From positions 186,001 through 250,000 of the forward strand of contig BQFW01000006.1 in the NCBI GenBank assembly GCA_020891255.1: a stretch of 64,000 nt of DNA, given 5' to 3'. Of this stretch, positions 1 to 15,311 are shown piece after piece (the stretch's first letter is position 1; every line of letters starts with the position of its first letter). This DNA comes from Entomortierella parvispora E1425. Taxonomy: Eukaryota; Fungi; Mortierellomycota. Made by a program: the position numbers and the translations under genes. The notes beneath the pieces are model-generated. The model searched no databases. It was not told the DNA's origin and was given only the letters and a program-made list of their open reading frames with translations.

Positions 1-1446
1 GTGACAGTAAGCAAGCAGTCCACTCTATCAGAATCAGCTGTTCGGTCCCTCATTGTGTTACTCAAGAACGACGACTGCAGGGTTCGATCATCAGCTGTAT
101 TAATATTGGTCACACAGTCTACATTGACAGGACCCGTCATCAAGTCTCTCATTGCTGCACTCATGAATGACGGCTGGGGGGTAAGATCTTCAGCAGCGCT
201 GGCATTGGGTAAACAGACTAGGCTTACGGACTCGGCCATTCGGTCCCTCAATGCTGCACTCAAATGTTGCCATTGGAAAGTCAGGTTTTCAGTGGCGACT
301 GCTCTCGGCAACCGGTCCATGTTGACAGTACCCGTTATACAGTCTCTCTTCGCTGCAATCAAGGATGACGACTGGAGAGTTAGGTCTTCCGCACAATTGG
401 CATTGGAAAAACAGTCCAAATTGACGGAATCGGCCATTCAGTCCCTCATTGTTGCACTCAAGGATGAGGCGGAGGATGTTAGGTCCTTAGCACAGTCGTT
501 ATTAGCCAAGCAGTCGACGTTATCGGAATCGGCCATCCAGTCCCTCATTGCTGCACTCAAGGATGACGATTGGAGAGTGAGGTATTCGGTACAGTTGGTA
601 TTGGAGAATCAATCTATGTTGTCGGAATCGGTTATCCAATCCCTCATCGGTGCACTCAAGGATGAAGTTCGGGAAGTTAGGTCTTCAGCAGCATCGATAT
701 TAGGCAAGCAATCCATCTTGACGGAATCAGTCATTGGGTCCCTCACGGTTGCACTCGGGGACGACTATTGGAAAGTCAGGTCTTTAGCAGTTTCAATACT
801 GGGTGCACAGCCTATGTGGACAGGATCAGTCCTTCAGTCTGTCGTGGCTGCACTCGAGGATGAGGATCAGGATGTGAGGTCTTCAGCAGCGTCGGCACTG
901 GGCAAACAGTCGACGTTGCCAGAATCAGTCACCCAGTCGCTCATTTCCGCGCTCCAGGACGACCATTGGAAAATAAGGACTTCAGCACAATTGGCCTTAG
1001 AAAACCAGACAGCACTGACAGAGTCCGCCGTTCAGCGGCTCATTGCGGCACTCGAGCATGACGTTAAGGATGTCCACGTTGCAGCGGAAACGATAATAGC
1101 CAAACAATCCACGTTGACGAGATCAGTTATCCAGTCCCTCGTTGCGGCACTCAGACATGACGAACAGAGAGTCAGGGACTTGGCTTTCCATATTCTTCAG
1201 AGCCAATTCGCGTCGACGGGTCATGCACTTTTATATCTGACAGAAGAGGAGACTGCCTCTCAGTATGAGCGCCACCTCTTTAGTTATAGTTGTGGCCGTG
1301 TGTTGTCTTTCCAGGTACGGCCTAATGGACTGTATTTCTACACGGAGCAAGGTGCACTGCACGTAGAACTCAATGACCAAGAAAGACTGGATGTGATATC
1401 GTCGGCCTTTAGGTCTGTTCAGCAAAGGTTTGGGCTGATACCATAA
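1..1446 (+). CDS. HEAT-repeat protein, 5' part outside the window; about 13 repeats of 33 aa; possibly the C-terminal part of a NACHT-HEAT NLR-like protein
   Basis: Uninterrupted 481-aa frame with the repeated unit VRSSA(A/Q)xALxKQSxLxESxIQSLIxALKD(D/E)xWx at 99-nt periodicity. No introns. Short non-repeat C-terminal domain. Confidence 0.85.
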   Translation: MTVSKQSTLSESAVRSLIVLLKNDDCRVRSSAVLILVTQSTLTGPVIKSLIAALMNDGWGVRSSAALALGKQTRLTDSAIRSLNAALKCCHWKVRFSVATALGNRSMLTVPVIQSLFAAIKDDDWRVRSSAQLALEKQSKLTESAIQSLIVALKDEAEDVRSLAQSLLAKQSTLSESAIQSLIAALKDDDWRVRYSVQLVLENQSMLSESVIQSLIGALKDEVREVRSSAASILGKQSILTESVIGSLTVALGDDYWKVRSLAVSILGAQPMWTGSVLQSVVAALEDEDQDVRSSAASALGKQSTLPESVTQSLISALQDDHWKIRTSAQLALENQTALTESAVQRLIAALEHDVKDVHVAAETIIAKQSTLTRSVIQSLVAALRHDEQRVRDLAFHILQSQFASTGHALLYLTEEETASQYERHLFSYSCGRVLSFQVRPNGLYFYTEQGALHVELNDQERLDVISSAFRSVQQRFGLIP

Positions 1447-1947: not shown

Positions 1948-4791
1948 TTAACAAGTATCCGAGTCGGTAAAGCCATCCTCTTCTGCATCAGCCGCAGCCT
2001 TCAATCGCTCAGCAAATGACTTTGGCTTGCCTGGTAAGGATCGTAACTTTGATGCAATGCTGCGTTCAATGTCAGTTCTTTCAAGTTCAATCGATTTTCG
2101 ACTAGATGGTGAATTAAGCGCAAAGCCCTCCTCGTCGTCATCCTTCAGCTGATCCATGATCGACTTTCGCCTGCCAGTTTGCTTGGCCGGTGAGTTTAGC
2201 ACGAGAAGGTCCCACTCCAAATCCGACTCCATCTCTACATTGGAGGGTGGCAAGATTGCCCTATTGCCCCGTCGAATTCGGCGTTCATACTCCGCTTTCT
2301 TTACGAGCACTTCTTTCGAGTACCGATCATATAACATCTAGATGTAATGAACACACAGTTGTTGGTGCAATCGCACACATCAGGCAAAAAAAAAAAAAAA
2401 GAAAAAAAAAATCCAACATCACTTACACAACACTTACCAAAAGACTGAACAGGCGATGCATATCGTTTTTCATAAAGTCCAGGATCTCAGACTCCATTTG
2501 TGGTAGAAGGATTTTGTCACAAGCTGGACCAGCGACCCAAATATCATCCAACATCTTCAGAGAAAATATTGTAGCTTCCATCCCTATACGCCATTGATAA
2601 ATACCCACCTGGTTAGAAAAGTGATGACTTCAACAACACAACATAAAGCAAAGATAGGCACTCACAGGTCCTACCTCTCATCACACAAACAGGGGGACAC
2701 ATCAGCCCGTAATTTCTTAGCAATAACGAAATCGACTTCATGGCCTTGATAGTTCTTCGAAGCTGTATGTCTTCTTTGACATCGGTACACAACGCCTTCT
2801 TCAATTCGAAGTTGGCGAGCTCGAGGTGTTCAACAGTCATGATCGAATCGCACTTTCGCGTCCCAGCATTGATTCCAAAGATCGTAAAGAGATCCAAGTT
2901 CGATTGTCTGGCAGCTGCAAGGCCTTGCTCACCGCTACAGTAATCCACCCAGTAGTGCACTATTAACAACAGACTACATTCAGAAGAAGCCTTTGATGGG
3001 ACATGACGATATCACTTACAGGTTCAAGGCCAGGCAGGCTGTTGCTGGCAACTGTTCCCGAAAAATAGCTGACCACAGACTGACGGCATCTCCCTCTGAT
3101 GCATCCTTGGTTCGGCCAGACAACGGACGCTCTGCATGCTTGAGGCTATGTTACAATCCAGCATTAGTGTTATTCGCGTTAGTGGTAGGTAGAGCCATGT
3201 TACCACAGTATTCAATTCATGAACAACTGCTCACATTGTTTTAAGAGCATCGAGGGAACGGCAATAAGGCTCGGAGCCCGCTATAGCCTGAAGCTCATAA
3301 ATTTTGGATATCAACACCTGTGCTTTCACTCCGGCATCTGTCGTCGTAGCACCTTCAGCGATTTCCATTAGCGGTGCAACAATTGCTGAAAACCCGGCGT
3401 CTGGAGTGTCGAGCTCCTTAACAGCACACACATCTAATGCTCGCTGATATTCGTCCTTGAAGGTAGCATTCGCAGTTTGACAGAACATGTTCCAGACACC
3501 CGAAAGTGAGACGCTACACAAAATAACAAGATACGGGGTCAGCAAGGGTCACCTAGAGTCTAAAAAATAGAGCATAGACAGTTGAACTTACAAAGCGTCC
3601 TTGAGAGGCAGGCTGTAGTCTGGATTCGGGTATTTGGTAGCATCACTACCCTTCTTAAGGTATGATAGGGACAGGTGGCATAGTTTCTGTCGTTTAGTAG
3701 GAAGGATGTCATCAACAGCTGTGAACTCGGGTAGTGCCTCGTAGATGCCAAAGTGCTATGAAATTAAAGAGAGAAAAAAGAGTCAGCGTCAAAGGCACTC
3801 ATCCAAGATATAAATATAGGCAAGGGCAAGAGTGAATCATACCATGGCGTGAGCAATATCGACAAGCGACCTAAAAGTGGCGGGATCCTTTTCAGTACGG
3901 CGCCGCTTAATCCCATCCACCAGAGAATCTTCCGATCTCCCACGACTTTTAGAAGATGAGGACGAAGTCCTAACAGTGGACGACAAAGATGAGGCTGAGG
4001 AAGTTCCAACAGAGGATGGCAGAGACGAGGTCGAGGAAGTCCCAACGTTGGACGACAAAGACGAGGGCGATGAAGCCCCAACAGAAGCCCCATGAGTAGA
4101 TGACAAAGCCCCGATAGTAAAGGGTGAAGACCCAGTAGTTGACAACGGAGCATTCAGGAAAGGATGACAATGATCATCGGCGGACTGAGACTTGCCGTCA
4201 GGAATGGCGCTCATACTATTCATGGGCAGAGGTGCCGGTGCTAAAGAAGAGATGGAGGGTGTTAATAGTCAATCGTACCAATAACAGGCTCAAAACAACA
4301 GGCGATTTCATGAGGTGGGGTTTACTATTACGGGTCATTGCTGTATGCTCCTTGTGCTGTGTGACAGAGGTCAGAGGCATGTCGGAGGGCACAACAGAGT
4401 ACTGTCTCTGCTCTTCGGCATTCTCGGCGATAATACTCTCCGCAAATGGTTCTGAGCCTCCGATGATGTGGCCCGCTGTCTTCCATGCCATTTTCTTCGC
4501 GATTGCCTTGGCATTCTGACGCTCCCAATAGGTGCGACCTTCTGAGTTCTTCCACGCCTCAAATTTGTTGGTCAAGAGAGTTCTCTCCTGCTCGGGAATA
4601 TCAGCCTCGCCGAGGCATCTCATGTACCTGCGGTGGCCATCATCACACTGGATAATGCCAAACTGGTCAAAGAACACTCCAGGGGCTTTGTCACGGGTCT
4701 CTTGAAACCAGGATATTTCCGGGTCTGTAAGTGACTTCGCTCCTTTGTTCTCGTCCTTCCTGTTGCCCTTGCTGCTTTTGGAGTAGACCAT
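1948..4791 (-). CDS. CR (Crinkler-RHS)-effector-like protein: helical header, low-complexity linker and C-terminal PD-(D/E)xK nuclease domain with intact catalytic motif (gene A, about 740 aa)
   Basis: Hand-built 8-exon model, all GT-AG and phase-consistent: 4791-4332, 4240-3843, 3755-3592, 3513-3235, 3145-3020, 2934-2675, 2583-2438, 2337-1948. Motif GE...RKCD-x13-ELKK (Asp 2849-2847, Glu 2807-2805, Lys 2801-2799). Confidence 0.8.
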
Positions 4792-4986
4792 GATGGGGCA
4801 ATCTTTGGGATGCCTAACCAAGTAATAGAGAAAATGAATTAATGAATTATATAAGTCAGTGCAAGAATTAAAAGAAGAAACAAAAATGGGAAAAAGCGAC
4901 GAGAACGAGCACATATCAAGAGACAAAGAGGATTTCATCAGTCTTCATCAGTCTTGCATTAGAGTGCAGGTATCAAATGTACATTC

Positions 4987-5175
4987 ACAAAGGTTCACAA
5001 AAAAGCGAGCGCCAACAACCATGCAGACCACAAGAGGGGCCACCAGACCTTGATGTACTTTCTGCTCTCAGTAAGGAAGGACAAAGAAGTGTGGGAGTCG
5101 CGGTTTAAACTGACATTCAGTGGCAGAACGCCATGGAATGGAGTCGCGTTACCATCCTTATTCCTAATGCTCAAT
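4987..5175. repeat. Dispersed repeat of about 180 bp, copy 1, about 200 bp upstream of gene A
   Basis: Aligns by eye with 9287-9458, 9480-9640 and 9950-10135 (shared aggttcacaa...cagaccttgatgtactt...gtgggagtcgcggtttaaac...cagaacgccatggaatggagtcgcgtt). Confidence 0.85.
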
Positions 5176-6752
5176 GCTCGACACTACGACGAACTCATCA
5201 AAATCATTACTGGGCGATGCCAGCGCGAAAGCACGGGTAATGGCGGCAGCAATGCAGACGAAACATGCGGTACACTTCTATCGAGAATGAAACGACTTAC
5301 AACTAAACGAAACGACAATCTTTGAGAGATGTTCGGTGATGGGAAAATGAGAAGTGTTTAGTGATGGGGACGAAAGAGAGGGGTGTTCGGTGATGAATGG
5401 AGTGGCACTCACAGATTTTGGGCGTCTATGCAGCGAAACGGGAGCGAGGCCAACAAATAGGGAAGCAGAGCACTGAGGTGGAAGACAACGGGGTCAAGAA
5501 AGTTCAGCTTCGCGTTCTTGAACAACTTTCCGCGACGCGCCATGCTCACACACGTGACATCGTAAGGAATGACGTCTCTGTATTTGGACACGGCGTATTG
5601 TAGACATCGGCCAAACAGGAAATCCATCTGGGACGCGCTATAGCACTACAGTGCCAGATTGATCAGATGGAAGAGGATGGCACTTACATCAACCAACTGT
5701 AGCCCTTCGTGTCAGGCGAACTTCACTGTTCGTCCATGCTTCTTCCTCCCCACACCAGCATCATGCTCATCTCATGCATTCATCTTTATTCTTGTATCTT
5801 GCATCACCCCCTCTCCGCTCTCTCCTCTCTCATCAGTCTTATCCGTGTCTCGTGTCGCTGTTTTCTCTGTAGCATCGCGCTCAATGAGGGGGAAGGCGAA
5901 AAATCAAGGAGTGAAACACTGTCAAAGTTTGGGAAGAAAAAAATGGACTCAAGGGCACCAACTCACAAAAAATCAGGGACTCGTAGATCGTTCCTATCTC
6001 TTTCCTCCTTGTTCCCTCTTGTTTGCTCCTGTGCGTCCGAGTTGATCGTCTCGGCTTTTCTCTTTTTCTTTGTTTCTATCCCTCTTCTTTCCATTTCTCT
6101 TTCTTTGATGGTTTCTTCTTTCCCCATTTTGTGCCTCACTATTTCGTCTGTTCACTGAAGAGCCTTTCAAAGTACCGCGACCCTCAATTCTCAGCCTACA
6201 ATCACCGAGATAAAAGAACCAGGCTACTCAGACATCCATTTGTTAATATCAGGTCTGCAGGGACTGAGCTGTGCCTTCTTTCTCTGCTTGCGTTCAACTC
6301 GACACATGCATCCCTCCTTTCTTCGGCTCTCTCGTCACTTGCACCCACTCAACTCTACTGTACTATCCTCTCGTCTCCTTTCTTGAATCACGGTGAAAGA
6401 CAGCCTTATTGGACTGCTTCTGCTCTCGCCAAAACGCGACTTCTCCCACTTTTTCCCAAGGAACTCCAGCTTAAAAGCTTCAAGATGAACAGTAGCCGAC
6501 TTTTCGCCTTCTACTCAATTTCAGGGGCCCCAAAGAAATCCCAATCTTGAAAATCACCGTGGAGGGCAGTACAGTTTGGTCGTGGTGATTGTACGCTTAT
6601 CAGGAATCAAGCATTCGCCAATGGTTTTGCGGAGACAGGTGTATCCAAAGATTTGGCAATGCGCACTTTTTTTTTTTGTTTTCGAGCAAGTAGAGCAAGT
6701 AGTTTAGGATGGATCTGGAAAGTTCAGCCAGTGGTTCTTTCTATCGTCCTCC

Positions 6753-9073
6753 TCATAGTTCGTCCTCCTCACCAATGACATTGTGATCATGCTCAAGTTC
6801 CGCCATCACCTTTTGCATTCCCTGCTGGAAGCGTTGATTGTTTGGTGTGGATATACCGACCATGGTCCTTGCTGCCTTTGGCTCTGTTGGTTTTGTCGGC
6901 GTACGAAAGATAACGTCGCGCCAGTTAATGTGCTCAATCTCCTTGTCCAGACCATCATCATCCTCAACCTCTATGCCCGCCAAATCGCTCCCATGTTCGA
7001 TGCCCGTTCCTTCTCCTTCCTCGTCCTGTCCAACTGTATTCTGAGTGTAGTTGAATATATCGATTTTCTCATTAGCATCCACTGTGTACTCGTGATAATA
7101 TTCCTAGATATACAGATTCAGAGATTTAATTCAGGCTTGAGAAGTGCCTTTCAACAATCTTCAGTTTTAGTACCCACCAGCAAGTTTTTCAGTTGATGGG
7201 CACCGTTATCGATGAAGAGATTCCAAGCCGCCTCCGTTTTTGGTAGCACGATGGCATTACAGGCCGGCGCGGCAACAAACACTCCCTTCCAAGGCATTAC
7301 TCGAAAAATATCAACCTTCAGACCTATATTTACAATATATTCAACACAATATTAGACCATTGCTTTCAATCATCTATCCAACCATTTTAAATCTTACCGT
7401 GGATCGAGAGCTGAGGCGGGCAATCCAGACCAAACTTGCTCAACTCCAGCATGACAGACCGCGCAATTTTAATGTTTTTCCGCAATTGAATCTTGACCGC
7501 AACGGGCGGAGTCGATGCCCTTGTTACCCCTCCATTTCCGAACTGTGTCTTTCCAATAGATAGGATACAGTTACACTTCCGTGCACCGCAACCTGTGTTC
7601 AATGCGCACGCCAGTTTGCTTTTCGACACACGGGTGGCATGGCTTGCCCTTTCACCGCTGTTGAGAGATTAAATGGAAAGGAGCGCGGCACACATAAACC
7701 AGTCAGAAACAAACCAGACGTTGAGTTATTCAAGGAAAGATATCTTGACTTACAAGTGAAAAGTAAATGGAGTTCCCTTTGGTCTACCATCCTTGAGAAT
7801 ACTGCCCCAGATCAACAGTGCATCGCTTTCTGAGGGCTCATTGTCGCCATGGTGTGGGTCAAGGATGTTCTCGATGCTATCATTTAAAATGGGATGACGT
7901 CAATATCCTGCGGATGCAACCAAGTTCTTGGATATCATAATATCACACTACTTACATATTTCTGAGGACCAGTAAGAAGAGCCTGAAGGCCGGCTTAGAG
8001 CCAAGGCACGAATACACGTCCTCCAAGACAGCGGTCAGCTTTTTTGTCTTTGTGATCTTCAGAGAGTTCAGCAGCCTTGTGACCTCCTCATCCTTAGATT
8101 CCAGCTCGGGTATTATACAGAGGCTTTTGGCGTCCAGGCGCTCAGCAGTTGATAATGTAGTTCTTGCCACAGGGGAGTATAAGTTGAAGACTCCAGACAA
8201 TGCAACAAAGGCGTCATGAAGGTGGAGACAACCTTCCTTGCTCGTGGTTTGCTGCTCAATGGCCCTTTTTGCATCTTTAAGGTGGCGCCATGCCAATTTG
8301 TACAATTTCCCAGGCACAGGATCGTCCTCGGTGTTACTGGTATCCTCTAAGGGAAGATCAACGGTATTGCCCTTGAACTAATCAGCAGGAGGAAATGTGG
8401 GCATTAGCTTCTACAAATAAGAATACGGCAACATTGCAAATACATTTCAGGAAAGCTCTACCAATTGAACGGCAATTTCCGCCAAATCGTGCCAGGGATC
8501 TCGAAGTCGTATCCTCTTCTTTGGCAAACTTTGCGCCGTTGCAGTCTTCGTTCTTTTGGAATGGTCTTTGCGTGCAAAATCCGCGCTTGGAATGAGATTG
8601 GGTGTGTTGGAAGTCCGGCTAGATCTGGGGATAGAAGGCTCAGTGTCACAGGCCGGCGGCAAGTCGTAAACTACTGCAGAGTACCGGGTCTGCTCCTTCG
8701 CATTTTCATCAATTATGGTGCGAACGAATGGTTCCAAGTCACCGATGATTTTTCCTGCTGTCTTCCAAGCCGTTTTCTTCGCGACTTCCTTCGTATTCCG
8801 ACGCTCCCAATAGGCCTGGCTTTTAGATCTCTTCCACTCGTCAAAGTTGACGATCAAAAGAGCTCGTTCTTGCTTGGAAAGATTAGACCGATGAAGAGCC
8901 CTCGCATATCGCAGGTGGCCATATTCTCGCTTGGTGATGCCGAACTTGTCAAAGAACGCTTCCGGGGTCGGGTCGCTGCTCTCTTTGAACCAAGAGATGT
9001 CTTGATCTGCAATTATCTTCGCACCGTTGCTGTTGACTTTCTCTTTGGCGCTGCCGTTATAGATCTGATCCAT
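6753..9073 (-). CDS. CR-effector-like paralog of gene A with a catalytically degenerate PD-(D/E)xK domain (gene B, about 637 aa)
   Basis: 6-exon model, phase-consistent, no stops: 9073-8462, 8377-7956, 7876-7754, 7657-7398, 7323-7178, 7103-6753. Nuclease exons are 260 and 146 nt, the same as in gene A. Motif reads RKCN-x13-GVTR. Header is homologous to gene A (ISWF.E....P..FFD.FG...YWER.N.K..AKK.AWKTAG.IIG..EPF). Confidence 0.8.
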
Positions 9074-9286
9074 GATGCGGCCAATTGACGTAAATTCTAA
9101 CGAAGCAATGCAATGATTGGGTTGTTTAAGTCATTGGTACAACAATTAGAAAATGATGTCACGCCTCACAGACTTGTGTGCAGCGCTCTGTCTGCCATTG
9201 ATAAACGATAAAATCATCTGGTGGCAGCAGGGGGTTAGCAAAGAGGATGAAACAACTCAGAGCCAAGCAAGTACTACCGTCCGAGC

Positions 9287-10205
9287 AAAGGTTCACAAGA
9301 GTAAGCGCCAACAAGCACGCGGACCATGAGAGGGACCATCAGACCTTGATGTACTTCCTGCTCACAGTAAGGAAGGTCAAAGAAGGACAGCACACTCTGT
9401 GGGAGTCGCGGTTTAAACGGACATTCGTGACAGAACGCCATGGAATGGAGTCGCGTTGAACGTCTTGCTTTGCGGATGTAACAAGCACGCGGACCATGAG
9501 AGGGACCATCAGACCTTGATGTACTTCCTGCTCTCAGTAAGGAAGGTCAAAGAAGGACAGCACACTCTGTGGGAGTCGCGGTTTTAAACGGACATTCGTG
9601 ACAGAACGCCATGGAATGGAGTCGCGTTACCATCCTTATTCCCAGTACTCAACCATGTACAATCCATAGAGTTTCGGAAGATAATGGGGAGACGGCGTGA
9701 GATGCAGCAGTGGGGTGAAGAATATTAAGATATTAAGAGAGCAGTGCGCTTGCATCTTCTGTTGATTGAGGAGCGTCAATGCTAACCATGGAGGACGTAG
9801 AAGGGAGTACAGTACTTGCCTGAGAATGAGAAGACCTGTTGAAAAGAAGAGCCGATGGAACGAATGGATATATAGGCAGGACAATCCACGCAATAATTAC
9901 GTCACCGGATGAGCTATCGCAACTGCTGGGTCACTACTTCCTCTTTCTCTAGGTTCACAAGAGTAAGCGCCAACAAGCACGCGGACCATGAGAGGGACCA
10001 TCAGACCTTGATGTACTTCCTGCTCACAGTAAGGAAGGTCAAAGAAGGACAGCACACTCTGTGGGAGTCGCGATTTAAACGGACATTCGTGACAGAACGC
10101 CATGGAATGGAGTCGCGTTACCATTCTCATTCCCAATGCTCAACCATGTACAATCCATAGAGTTTAGGAAGATAATGGGGAGACGGCGTGAGATGCAGCA
10201 GTAGG
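9287..10205. repeat. Three further copies of the 180-bp repeat (tandem pair 9287-9640 and a copy at 9950-10135), plus an 80-bp extension shared by 9635-9715 and 10130-10205
   Basis: Near-identical text repeats visible directly, e.g. aacaagcacgcggaccatgagagggaccatcagaccttgatgtacttcctg near 9310, 9480 and 9970. Confidence 0.9.
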
Positions 10206-11110: not shown

Positions 11111-12366
11111 GAGTCTGTTAATGTCCTTTGGAGAAAGGAGCATTCCTCGGTGGAATCAAGCGAAGAATCCCATCCCGATGATTCTGATCGGAATCAAGAA
11201 CGCTCGAACGATGCAGAGGATAGTGATAATGGTCCTTCAGACTCCTCAGCACCGCAGGCAAGCGTCAATGGGTCACCTACAACAGAGGATAGAGATAATG
11301 GTCCTCCAGACTCTACAGCACCCCCAAAGGCAAGCGAGGGTCGACATTTGATAGGGATTAGTGAAGTTGATGGCCTTGATCTACCAGAGTCGGATAAAGA
11401 ACTACCACGAGTTGACAGCGACGGAAGCGAGCCACAGAGTATGTCCCGTTATGGAAATATCAACGACAGGATAAAAAAGGAGGATGATGACTGGAGGGAC
11501 CAATACTGGGACAATGGCTCCCCCGATTCCGCCGATTCCCCTTGCGACATTAGCAGGAATCAAAGGCCTGGAGATGGCCATGGACGACCAGCCGGTAATG
11601 TAGATGATCATAGGAGGAACCAGCGCTCTAAGGACAGCCCTCGTATGGATCCACAAGGCCAATTGCAACCCAGCCACGGCCGACACCATACAAAGAGCCC
11701 AAGCGGGAGCAGGAGCAGCGGCTACAGCAGTAGGGAACAACGCCGTCGGAACCATTGCCATAAAAGGAGCCAAAGCAAGAGCAGCGACTACAGCAGTAGG
11801 GACCTACGCCATGGAGGCCGTCGTTATAGAAGGAGCAGAAGCAGGAGCAGAAGCAGCGACTACAGCAGTAGGAACCTGCACCGTGGAGGCCGTCGCTATA
11901 AAAGGAGCCGAAGCAGGAGCCGAAGCAGCGACTACAGCAGTAGGAGCGAACGCCGTGGGAGTCGTCGCCTCAAGAGGAGCACTCATAATAGGAACAGCCA
12001 AAGAAGCGACAGCTGTAGGGATCGACTGCTTAGGAGCCGACGCCGTAGGACCCGCCGGAATGGGAAGAGTCGAAACAGTGACTGCAGTAATAATTACAGC
12101 AGCGATTACAGCAGCAATTATAGCAGCGAATATAGCAATATGGACCGACAGCGCCGAAACCGATGTCATAACATTCAGCACCACAAGAACCAGCGTCACA
12201 TAAACCAACGCAGCCGGGACCGACATCATGGCTATAAACGAAGTTGGAGTCAAGAGCGTAGCTTCCCAGGCCATGTGGAGCAGCACCATTGGGATCGAGG
12301 CATCAGCAACGAAGCCAGAAATATGGGCAAACCCGACTTACCGGACGGAGACGAGCGTGATGATAG
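11111..12366 (+). CDS. Acidic then Arg/Ser-rich low-complexity exon, probably the N-terminal part of the Mutator polyprotein
   Basis: Acceptor ttttctttag at 11110 and an open frame of over 400 codons with (SSDYSSR...GGRRY.RSRSRSR)n repeats. It runs into the FAR1 frame via a one-base frameshift near 12365. Confidence 0.55.
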
Positions 12367-15311
12367 GGACATGTGGTCCCTGAGGTCGGCTCTATATTCC
12401 AAAGTCTGGATGAAGGAAGGTCACTGATCAAGTCATGGGCGGCCAAGGTCGGGTTTAAAGTCAGGAGCCGTGATTCAACTCTCTTGGGGCCTCACCAGTC
12501 AGGTATGAGTTTGCTCTCGTCATTCCTGTATTGTTTATTGGATTTTTGCTAATTTGTGTACGTTGTTGCTCGGGACATGTATAGTAAAGTTGGTCTGTTC
12601 TCTACAGGGCAACCATACTTCGCAAAAGGTCGATGATATAACGAAGCACCACAAGAAGCCGCTCTCGAAACGCTGCGACTGCCCTTTCTTCATTAACATG
12701 ACCAGCCCTCGCAAGATCTCTCCAAAGTGGCATATCACGAAGTTGCATGCAGAGCACAACGGGCATGAAATGAATCTTGATCTTGCACTATACGTGGAAC
12801 TTACTCCACCAATGCCTGCCGTTATTCAACGGTGTGCAACACTGGCTCACAGCATCAGGAAGACAATGGAGGATCTGGCTTACGACTTTCCCAACTGTAA
12901 TTTCAGCAAAACCGAGGTTCAGAGCCGACACAAAGCCTTTAGAAAAAAATCTGTACCTGCAAAAATATCTCAAAGTACCCAACTAGTCACCTTGTTGAAC
13001 CAGAAGTCTCTGTCGCTTGATACATTCGAGGGTTGGTACTACCAGACGAAATATGATTCCAAAGACCATCTACTCAACCTCATCTGGATGAGTCCTGATC
13101 AGAGGGAACTTTATCGACGCTATGGCGATGTGGTGGTAAACGACACGACATGCCAGACGAAACAGGCTGGGGATGAAATCGAATTGCTCTGTGGTTATCG
13201 ACTCCATGTTCAAGACTCGTCTGGTCGCTTGTGCATTAACCCGCCAAGAACTGGTAGTCGATTATCTTTGGATCTTGACCAATTTAAGATTGGGTAGTGG
13301 GGGCCATGTACCGAAGGTTATCATGGTGGACGAGGATCCTTCTATGGACGTCGCGTGTCCCGAGGCTTTCAAGCAAACTCATGTCGTGAACTGCGTCTGG
13401 CGCATTAACAAGAACATCTCCACTCGTTTGAGACGCCCCTTGGGTGATGAGCGATTCAAGATATTCATGCAGTTCTTCAGCGATGCGCGAGAGGCTCTTA
13501 CCCCATGCGCATTTGAAGTCATATGGGCTCAGTTGACGGCTCATTGTGATGATCCGGCAGCGCAAGGGATTGGAACGCAGGAGAAGGTTCGCAAGTACGT
13601 TGCGAGACTCTATGCGCGACGATGTCATTGAGCAGGGCCATGGGTTCTAGCATCCTTTACAGCAGGCATGAGGTCGACACAGCGAGTGGAGATGACACAC
13701 AACCTCATCAAGATGATGAATGTGAATAGCAATACTTCACTTGTCGACCTCTTTTCCGCAATCAGCACGAAAATACGAAATGAGATGTTTAGCTTGAAGA
13801 CTTCGGCCAGGGATCTGCCGGAAATACCACATTCCATGTCTATAAAGTTGTTTGGCTCTGCTCTCCGGGTGAACCGACAATTCCTCGACAAATTTGCCCA
13901 AAATCAGATGAAGCTCGAAGTGGATTTTTCTTTTGGGCATCGTCATGTCCCTGTTGACATTGCTGATGTCATGAACAAACGCGGCGACGTCAATGCCGGG
14001 CCGGTAAGTACCATCATGAGAAGAGCCTTCTGCGTTTTAAGAGTCAAACTAATCGTATTTACTCATCCTCTGAAATACGCCGTAGGCAAGAGTGACACGG
14101 GACGCTGCTCGGCTGGATTCTGTGTTCGCTTTAGTATCGAATATACAAGTGGACGTGGTAGATTCTGTCTTCAAAGTTTGGGACACGTCAACGGACGGAT
14201 ATTATTCTGAGTACGTTGTCCTATTTCTCGACAGCTCGTACTTTTGCACATGCGCTATGTTACAAAACAAAGGAATAGTTTGTCGCCACTTCTTTTGGAT
14301 GATGCAAGAGGACCATCGATTCATGTACCACATTCGGTTTATCCTTAGACGATGGTTCCAGGAAGAAATGCAGCAGGGCGCTATCACTGACGACAAGATC
14401 AAAGGACTCCCTTTTATCACAGCGGGCACCTACCGAGACCTTCCATCAGAAGAGAATCGCACAGCCGTAGGAAAGGATCGTTCATCCAATGGAATGTATC
14501 GTTCAGTCATTGGAACGAATCGTCCAGCCATTGGAAAGGATCGTCCGGCTAATGGAAAGGATCGTCCAGCCATTGGAAAGGATCGTCCAGCCACTGGAAA
14601 GGATCGTCCAGCCACTGGAAAGGATCGTAGCCAGTGGAGAGGACCGCCCAGCCAGCGGAGAGGACCGCCTAGCCAGCGGAAAGGATCAGCTCACTGACGG
14701 TTACATGAGCACCTCCCAAAAATTCTTTCCCCCGCAACCAGTATATCCACCCAGGACAGAAGGAGAAGTTTGGAAAGAAGCGCTTTAGCACAGTCATGGC
14801 GATGTCCAAGCAAGTCGCCGAGGGCTTGAAATATGTGCCAGATGAGGAGTATCAAGGCATGCTGGGAATAGTGGGCATGGTTAAGCAATTGGCGAACAGC
14901 TTGTCGCAAGGAACGATGGGTTTCACTTTGGAAGATATGACTGCAACCCGCGATCATCTACAGAAACTTCACGACGGGCCAAACAATGTCACTAATGGGG
15001 ATGAGGGCAGAGATATCGACATCGATGAAATCCATGCAATCTCGGATATATTCAATGGCATCCCTCCTTCAAACATTAGCGACGGCGAGATACCAAAAGC
15101 GATAGGCCGACCAAAGTTCACTCGACTCAAAGCGTCGTATGAGTCCAAACGCAGTCGACCAAAAGAACAAGCGACATCATCAACAGAGCAACCAAAGAGG
15201 CGGGCCAAGGGCACAGAGCAACCAAAACGGCTAGCCAAGGGTACAGAGCCAAGGCCACCGACAGCTGCACCCGCTCTTGTCAGTAAATGGAGTCGGCGCC
15301 CAATCCACTAA
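12367..15311 (+). mobile_element. Mutator (MULE) transposase pseudogene: FAR1 domain, MULE DDE domain, SWIM zinc finger, C-terminal tail
   Basis: PEVGSIFQSLDEGRSLIKSWAAKVGFKVR; intron 12503-12584; C..CPF..W.ITKLHAEHNGH; DTTCQT/(N)RLGM...VID..FKTRLVACAL..E...VDED...CVW(R)INKN; FTAGMRSTQRVE; YFCTC...GIVCRH. Lesions: frameshift near 13160, TGA at 13629-13631 in place of Trp, frameshifts near 14630 and 14770. Confidence 0.9.
14465..14690 (+). repeat. 21-bp tandem repeat (GKDRPA(T/I/N) heptapeptide, about 10 units) in the transposase C-terminal region
   Basis: ggaaaggatcgtccagcca(t/c)t repeated. One unit is 2 nt short and shifts the frame. Confidence 0.9.

Follow-up and report, generated by a model that had tools for sequence, protein, structure and literature searches.

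The window analysed here is a stretch of 64,000 nucleotides from the fungus Entomortierella parvispora E1425 (assembly GCA_020891255.1, contig BQFW01000006.1, positions 186,001 to 250,000 of the forward strand), and all positions below are counted within it unless a locus is named. It holds two adjacent genes, here called A and B, whose predicted products share an N-terminal header and a restriction-endonuclease-like PD-(D/E)xK domain; A has all three catalytic residues of that domain and B has none. Both splice models were predicted from the DNA, using open frames and GT-AG junctions. Gene A (1948–4791, minus strand) has eight exons (A1 to A8: 4791–4332, 4240–3843, 3755–3592, 3513–3235, 3145–3020, 2934–2675, 2583–2438 and 2337–1948), which encode a header, a Ser-rich linker, a helical middle region, the PD-(D/E)xK domain and an acidic tail. 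Gene B (6753–9073, minus strand) has a matching architecture in six exons (B1 to B6: 9073–8462, 8377–7956, 7876–7754, 7657–7398, 7323–7178 and 7103–6753). Every intron of both genes is bounded by GT-AG, including all five introns of B. When the frames and splice sites were rechecked, all six B exons proved open, as had been reported from the first reading of the sequence, with no stop or frameshift over 636 codons. The header of A is exon A1 (4332–4791, minus strand), an alpha-helical N-terminal module of 153 amino acids, and that of B is the first 150 amino acids of exon B1 (8624–9073, minus strand). The nuclease domain is encoded by exons A5 to A7 (2438–3145, minus strand) and B3 to B5 (7178–7876, minus strand).

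All searches were run exon by exon; no joined A or B protein was used, and orthologues served as proxies for whole domains. The two genes are collinear by exon-by-exon local BLOSUM62 scoring, which gave 363 for the headers (~50% identity), 60 for A4/B2, 44 for A5/B3, 122 for A6/B4 and 77 for A7/B5, with ~33% identity between A and B in the nuclease exon. Linkers and C-terminal tails have diverged. Exons A6 and B4 are both 260 nt long and exons A7 and B5 both 146 nt, in identical phases: the 260-nt exon starts after two codon bases and ends after one, and the 146-nt exon ends in phase 0. A common header and nuclease exons of identical size and phase, as claimed in the preliminary description of this DNA, were thus seen in both the gene models and the exon alignment. 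The A5/A6 junction is reused by P0040, an annotated orthologue protein of A.

The catalytic motif of A was read directly as D-x13-E-L-K (2799–2849, minus strand; GAT 2849–2847, GAA 2807–2805, AAG 2801–2799). In B the same positions read N-x13-G-V-T (7522–7572, minus strand; AAC 7572–7570, GGG 7530–7528, ACA 7524–7522), exactly the codons first reported, and residues flanking the triad sites are also altered (T to I, A to V). Each B codon had been described as one substitution away from a catalytic one. Since orthologues carry GAC or GAT, GAA or GAG, and AAA at these sites, the distance is one or two base changes. Repeat-induced point mutation (RIP)-like change was ruled out as the cause of the triad loss, the changes being G>A, A>G and A>C, and assembly error was ruled out as well, with three separate codons and two neighbouring residues differing. 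The non-catalytic motifs of the family (GE, RK, Q-x-RK, a PSE-x-D helix, DPWH and TPTK) are all kept in B.

To place these changes in context, we relied on a family profile made from seven copies of the 260-nt exon in this genome, which retrieved 270 representative proteins at E ≤ 0.001 from 1.84 billion representatives. In an alignment of 152 family representatives with A and B, the most conserved columns were D (133 of 145 non-gap rows), E (144 of 154) and K (145 of 152). Conserved besides the triad are the Glu of the GE motif, RK before the Asp, and Q-x-RK in the next helix, whose Gln is kept in 147 of 153 rows; the predicted A protein retains D, E and K together with GE, RK and Q-x-RK. The pattern of triad loss in B is more than chance: no columns of the family are better conserved, and although B is altered at no more than 25 of the 203 positions that are invariant in orthologues, all three triad sites are among them (naive chance ~0.002). 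Changes were also denser in the stretch from Asp to Lys, where 5 of 16 invariant positions are altered, than elsewhere (20 of 187; Fisher p = 0.03). At least one triad substitution was found in 20 of the 152 representatives, and the sole other triple loss among them is P0121 of Gamsiella multidivaricata (KAG0366137.1), with N, A and S. The E. parvispora genome contains at least 17 copies of the nuclease exon; the triad is kept in 16, in-frame stops occur in two, and no copy other than B lacks all three residues.

The fold of the domain was approached through P0040, residues 277–458 of which were modelled with AlphaFold2 (AF2) from a 51-sequence alignment (predicted local distance difference test score, pLDDT, 79.9). 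The model runs helix, strand, helix, strand, strand, long helix, strand, strand, helix, with D77 in the second strand (75–82) and E91 and K93 directly after the third (85–90). In an exhaustive VIA-align search with this model, more than 20 of the top 50 rows were restriction-endonuclease-fold proteins. The best was DrdV (Z 6.8, root-mean-square deviation 3.7, 130 residues aligned), followed by BpuSI (Z 5.9), a putative restriction-endonuclease-domain protein (Z 5.4) and TT1808 (Z 5.0), with BstEII, NgoMIV, Cfr10I, EcoRI, Hjc, Cas4, NucC and the HsdR fragment 3h1t (Z 3.9) in lower rows. The nearest named shapes in the ESM-Atlas were type I restriction R subunits with HSDR_N, and HSDR_N (PF04313) was matched by 9 of 51 members, at best with E 8.8e-5 and always under the gathering score of 25.1 bits; no other Pfam family was matched by more than two of the 51. 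Pfam searches with all 14 single exons and with paralogue open reading frames (ORFs) returned no match. Because motif conservation, HSDR_N matches and structure matches combine, each of them moderate, the C-terminal domain very likely adopts a PD-(D/E)xK fold of the HsdR-N type, in line with the restriction-endonuclease fold first proposed for it; motif columns, VIA-align, HSDR_N and Atlas shapes agree on this point.

The domain resembles HsdR-N and the related N-terminal nucleases of the type IIG/IIL enzymes BpuSI and DrdV in its alpha-beta-beta-beta-alpha-beta core, with D on a strand, E-x-K next and a Gln in the following helix. It differs from them in several respects. Apart from scoring below the HSDR_N gathering threshold, the family lacks helicase or methyltransferase modules; it is eukaryotic, intron-containing and Mortierellaceae-specific; its domain is fused to other parts (helical headers, a disordered linker, an acidic tail); and its model has an extra helix between the first and second core strands. 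With its residues intact, A most likely encodes an intracellular nuclease that depends on Mg and is active on DNA, as judged from its predicted protein.

We then asked how A and B are related to each other and to their counterparts elsewhere. A pairs with P0040 of Mortierella claussenii in the tree (support 1.0); P0040 is collinear with A2–A8 and 84–98% identical in A5–A7, and the proportions of nonsynonymous and synonymous differences between the two are 0.14 (pN) and 0.69 (pS). B falls in a separate clade with P0011 (Podila horticola), P0013, P0025 (Benniella), P0062, P0097, and the fragments P0151 and P0152 (support 0.986). All seven relatives of B keep D, E and K and are 74–86% identical to it in the nuclease exon, and across B3–B5 identity to triad-keeping orthologues is 67–90%. 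Loci L022, L023, L025, L026 and L027 hold B orthologues collinear with B. The node at which A and B join takes in 41 of the 126 tips of the tree, and the two genes sit in different, well-supported clades, for which reason we regard them, on this tree, as old paralogues and not recent tandem duplicates. This amends the preliminary description, which called them tandem paralogs. Since the closest relatives of B keep the triad, its loss is private to the B lineage.

Codon analysis over B2–B5, by pairwise and three-point distances, gave a ratio of nonsynonymous to synonymous substitution (dN/dS) of ~0.11–0.16 for B, well below the value near 1 that would have counted against the preliminary description. 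Pairwise ratios of B against its orthologues were 0.12–0.16, and those among intact orthologues 0.12–0.18. By three-point distances the B branch (dN ~0.09, dS 0.55–0.84) resembles the intact Benniella branch, and at the 203 invariant sites B and the intact Benniella orthologue have 25 private changes each. The rest of B, its splice sites and its non-catalytic motifs thus evolve under constraint, at a rate like that of the intact orthologues.

A and B probably belong, as anciently diverged members, to an undescribed family so far found in Mortierellaceae only. The 10 members looked up by name are all annotated as 'hypothetical protein' and all come from Mortierellaceae (Podila, Benniella, Mortierella, Gamsiella, Entomortierella and Haplosporangium), and the Atlas neighbours of the family are Mucoromycota clusters without Pfam. 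No Pfam model for the family was found with single exons, paralogue ORFs or 10 full-length members. Word searches returned no match for exon A1 and two fragments for exon B4, a method that misses full-length kin when given single exons. By inspection, members are built alike: the N-terminus varies, a disordered linker rich in Ser, Thr and Pro leads into a helical region, and the nuclease domain is followed by an acidic tail in which a TPxK/SPxK site is conserved. The linker ends in a basic KKR-type stretch, probably a nuclear localisation signal, beside the DPWH motif; N-termini are hydrophilic, with no signal peptide seen by inspection. Paralogues on contigs C1, C12 and C3 of this genome have the same body with other N-termini. 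What emerges is a sizeable Pfam-less family of eukaryotic proteins, predicted to be restriction-enzyme-like nucleases, whose N-terminal headers can be exchanged; it comes from a group of fungi of which biotechnology and soil ecology make use.

Headers distantly related to that of A and B were also observed before other bodies, at L045 (G000:C16:21500-29500), L046 (C11), L047 (C8) and L049 (C16:45000-53000). Some of these bodies contain PD...E-x-K-like strings by eye, for example PDVV...GELKG in L045, and L047 has E-I-T where L045 has E-L-K. These strings suggest a wider header-plus-nuclease superfamily in which the catalytic site may have changed recurrently.

The header comes with a second conserved part. 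Exons A1 and B1 are ~50% identical, and A1 is 50–57% identical to the headers of B-type orthologues. An AF2 model of the A1 header (pLDDT 80.8) has three short helices and one long helix; A1 had no Pfam match, and its best fold match, at Z 5.1, was helical noise and not convincing. Upstream of each gene lies a non-coding element of ~170 nt, in one copy ~190 nt upstream of the A ATG (4984–5236, no strand assigned) and in tandem copies that start ~210 nt upstream of the B ATG (9286–10205, no strand assigned). It was found ~150–230 nt upstream of every gene with an A/B-type header, often in tandem, with further copies at L025:8545-9847, L026:5408-5774, L022:4-121 and G000:C3:1620399-1620548. Within the E. 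parvispora genome it occurs at only four places, the fourth of which, on C3, is near a ribosomal P2-like ORF with no family gene nearby. The element is present at the header-bearing B-type loci L022, L025 and L026 and absent at L023, L027 and L024, which lack this header. Between genera it is 80–87% identical, compared with 67–71% for coding sequence. Rfam returned no match for it. The RNAalifold consensus is hairpin-rich (-24 kcal/mol), with three pairs showing compensatory changes, and the element could be a promoter/enhancer array or a structured 5' leader; conserved as it is, it may serve as a regulatory part.

It is this 5' cassette of element and header exon that A and B specifically have in common. 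Because in other genera it sits on B-type genes, A looks like an A-type body that acquired a B-type cassette, which would place A and B under the same regulation. Header identities of 50–57% in all directions suggest that such an acquisition, if it took place, was not recent.

Two known systems had been brought up for comparison with A and B. It is correct that Spok meiotic drivers kill by means of a PD-(D/E)xK nuclease: the Spok domain is HsdR-like, its K240A substitution abolishes killing, and resistance comes from a kinase domain and a Cys cluster (PMC6660238). Like Spok proteins, the members of the A/B family are fungal and predicted to be intracellular, and they combine a helical or coiled-coil N-terminus and unstructured linkers with an HsdR-like PD-(D/E)XK domain. 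Unlike them, they show no kinase match (Pfam, 10 full-length members) and no Spok-type Cys cluster by eye, and what follows their nuclease domain is an acidic tail. There is no match at the sequence level either; PF20516 (PDDEXK_12) appeared as a language-model lead of 0.76 only, never in hmmscan. We consequently do not place the family among the Spok proteins, and an antidote here would need to be a separate gene. The locus still lets one ask whether Spok-like nuclease conflict systems exist outside Ascomycota.

For Crinkler/CR (Crinkler-RHS-type) effectors, the account of Zhang et al. 2016, as reviewed in PMC5289972, describes headers, some of them alpha-helical, exchanged over restriction-endonuclease-fold C-terminal domains, with lineage-specific expansions and occurrence in non-pathogenic eukaryotes too. 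Modular header exchange over such a domain, lineage-specific expansion and a non-pathogenic eukaryote as host are what the A/B family has in common with that account. Membership is not supported. Pfam gave no Crinkler match and, in the 10 full-length members, no NTPase or kinase partner domain; the A1 header is all-helical and not ubiquitin-like; the N-termini are hydrophilic and lack a signal peptide; and a likely nuclear localisation signal is present.

We read B as a retained, catalytically dead pseudo-nuclease that may, without catalysis, bind nucleic acids or a partner, because the triad has been lost in this lineage alone and the rest of the protein is as constrained as in intact orthologues. 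An active nuclease A beside such a B, both from one undescribed Mortierellaceae family, is the reading that we hold most likely, at roughly 60%. As in other pseudoenzymes, a whole triad is gone in one lineage while fold and binding motifs, the ORF and a low dN/dS are kept; unlike in known examples, the role of B is a proposed one and its expression is predicted. With an intact A and a triad-dead B under a common 5' region, the locus would offer a natural pair for study of the PD-(D/E)xK scaffold without catalysis. Several points weigh against this reading or the fold beneath it. A Foldseek search of the P0040 model against the PDB gave no significant row, a profile search of PDB sequences gave no match, and the structure matches are middling, with Z below 8. 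The fold evidence comes from models of orthologue proxies in place of A or B themselves, the nuclease activity of family members is predicted, and the expression and splicing of B are predictions. Moreover, dS is near saturation (0.5–1.5) and the distance-based estimates average the whole branch, with which a recent loss of all constraint on B would be compatible.

That last point bears on whether B might be a redundant copy in early decay. After a single inactivating change the remaining catalytic residues would then have been free to drift, and the open frame and low dN/dS would reflect a recent loss or constraint earlier on a long branch. Redundancy and decay do take place in this genome, which holds at least 17 copies of the family, and in-frame stops interrupt two of these; replaced catalytic residues turn up here and there in the family, the dN/dS estimate covers a whole branch with dS of 0.55–0.84, and expression of B is a prediction. 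Drift of this kind sits poorly with five or six replacements inside 17 active-site codons when ~300 other codons show no excess over an intact branch of equal length (25 of 203 each), and with five GT-AG introns, 636 codons free of stops and frameshifts, and intact GE, RK, Q-x-RK, PSE-x-D helix, DPWH and TPTK motifs. We consider decay unlikely on balance, if the most serious of the alternatives; were B merely a decaying copy, the finding would be ordinary. Migration of catalytic residues is known in the PD-(D/E)xK superfamily, for instance in the Cfr10I/NgoMIV type, and B does keep the GE-motif Glu and the PSE-x-D helix, so that a still-active B with relocated residues was also considered. Given that three canonical positions were lost together, that no new Asp, Glu or Lys has appeared near the motif relative to orthologues, and that a triple loss recurs in one other representative only (P0121, of 152), we hold this to be very improbable, the least credible of the readings weighed here.

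The preliminary description went further and proposed that B may have been selected to act on A as a dominant-negative partner, an antidote or a decoy, within a toxin-antidote, self/non-self or spore-killer-like pair; B would then bind A or the substrate of A through its header or dead nuclease domain and so block cleavage. The genes are adjacent, with headers ~50% identical and an upstream element in common, suggesting co-regulation, and B lost its triad in the only genome seen with a B-type header on an active paralogue. The change in B is mildly concentrated at the active site (p = 0.03) and the rest of it is constrained, the long terminal helix of the header model could mediate dimerisation, and by analogy Spok provides a precedent for an HsdR-like nuclease as a fungal killer (PMC6660238). 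Elsewhere, however, the pair is not a conserved unit, because B and A orthologues stand alone. The B orthologues at L022, L023, L025, L026 and L027 (the last on a 4.2-kb contig) keep the triad in four to five other genera with no A-type gene in the available flanks, and their neighbourhoods are unrelated (among them MutS5/CENP-T, Ipi1/aminotransferase and RTA1). At L024 no A1-type header is detectable on the A orthologue, and the DNA available around it, 1.1 kb upstream and ~10 kb downstream, contains no B-type gene, so that co-occurrence of A and B as a unit was not seen at any of these loci. A and B are moreover distant paralogues, and sporadic triad substitutions recur in the family (20 of 152). 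Complex prediction for the A header with the B header returned a score of 0.00, which is no answer and weighs neither for nor against interaction. A dedicated toxin-antidote relation between A and B is not indicated, and this reading is left, like the Crinkler and Spok ones, without support because A and B are old paralogues whose orthologues are alone in other genera; what speaks positively for it is limited to adjacency and the shared 5' cassette, and we find it improbable. Of the proposal of selected inactivation, the loss of the triad with frame, splice sites, other motifs and constraint preserved is supported. More doubtful still is the fullest version, in which A would be a nuclear killer nuclease and B its dead, dominant-negative guard, co-regulated and header-matched, in a two-gene conflict module. 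If true, an early-diverging fungus outside Dikarya would have the logic of Spok split over two genes, or else a system for allorecognition, and the exchangeable header-plus-element cassette would be what pairs killers with guards.

Beyond the two genes, some features of the surrounding window were observed. Positions 1–1200 (plus strand) contain ten to eleven 99-nt tandem repeats, encoding units of 33 amino acids, in a gene that converges on the 3' end of A. On the other side, a long ORF at 11150–12427 (plus strand) codes for a protein that is extremely rich in Arg and Ser and in which SRSRSRSSDYSSR units recur. ORFs at 12554–14700 (plus strand) resemble, by eye only, a transposase of the Mutator-like element (MULE)/FAR1 type, with a SWIM zinc-finger-like CxC...CxH string, which would place a putative Mutator-like element ~3.5 kb upstream of B.

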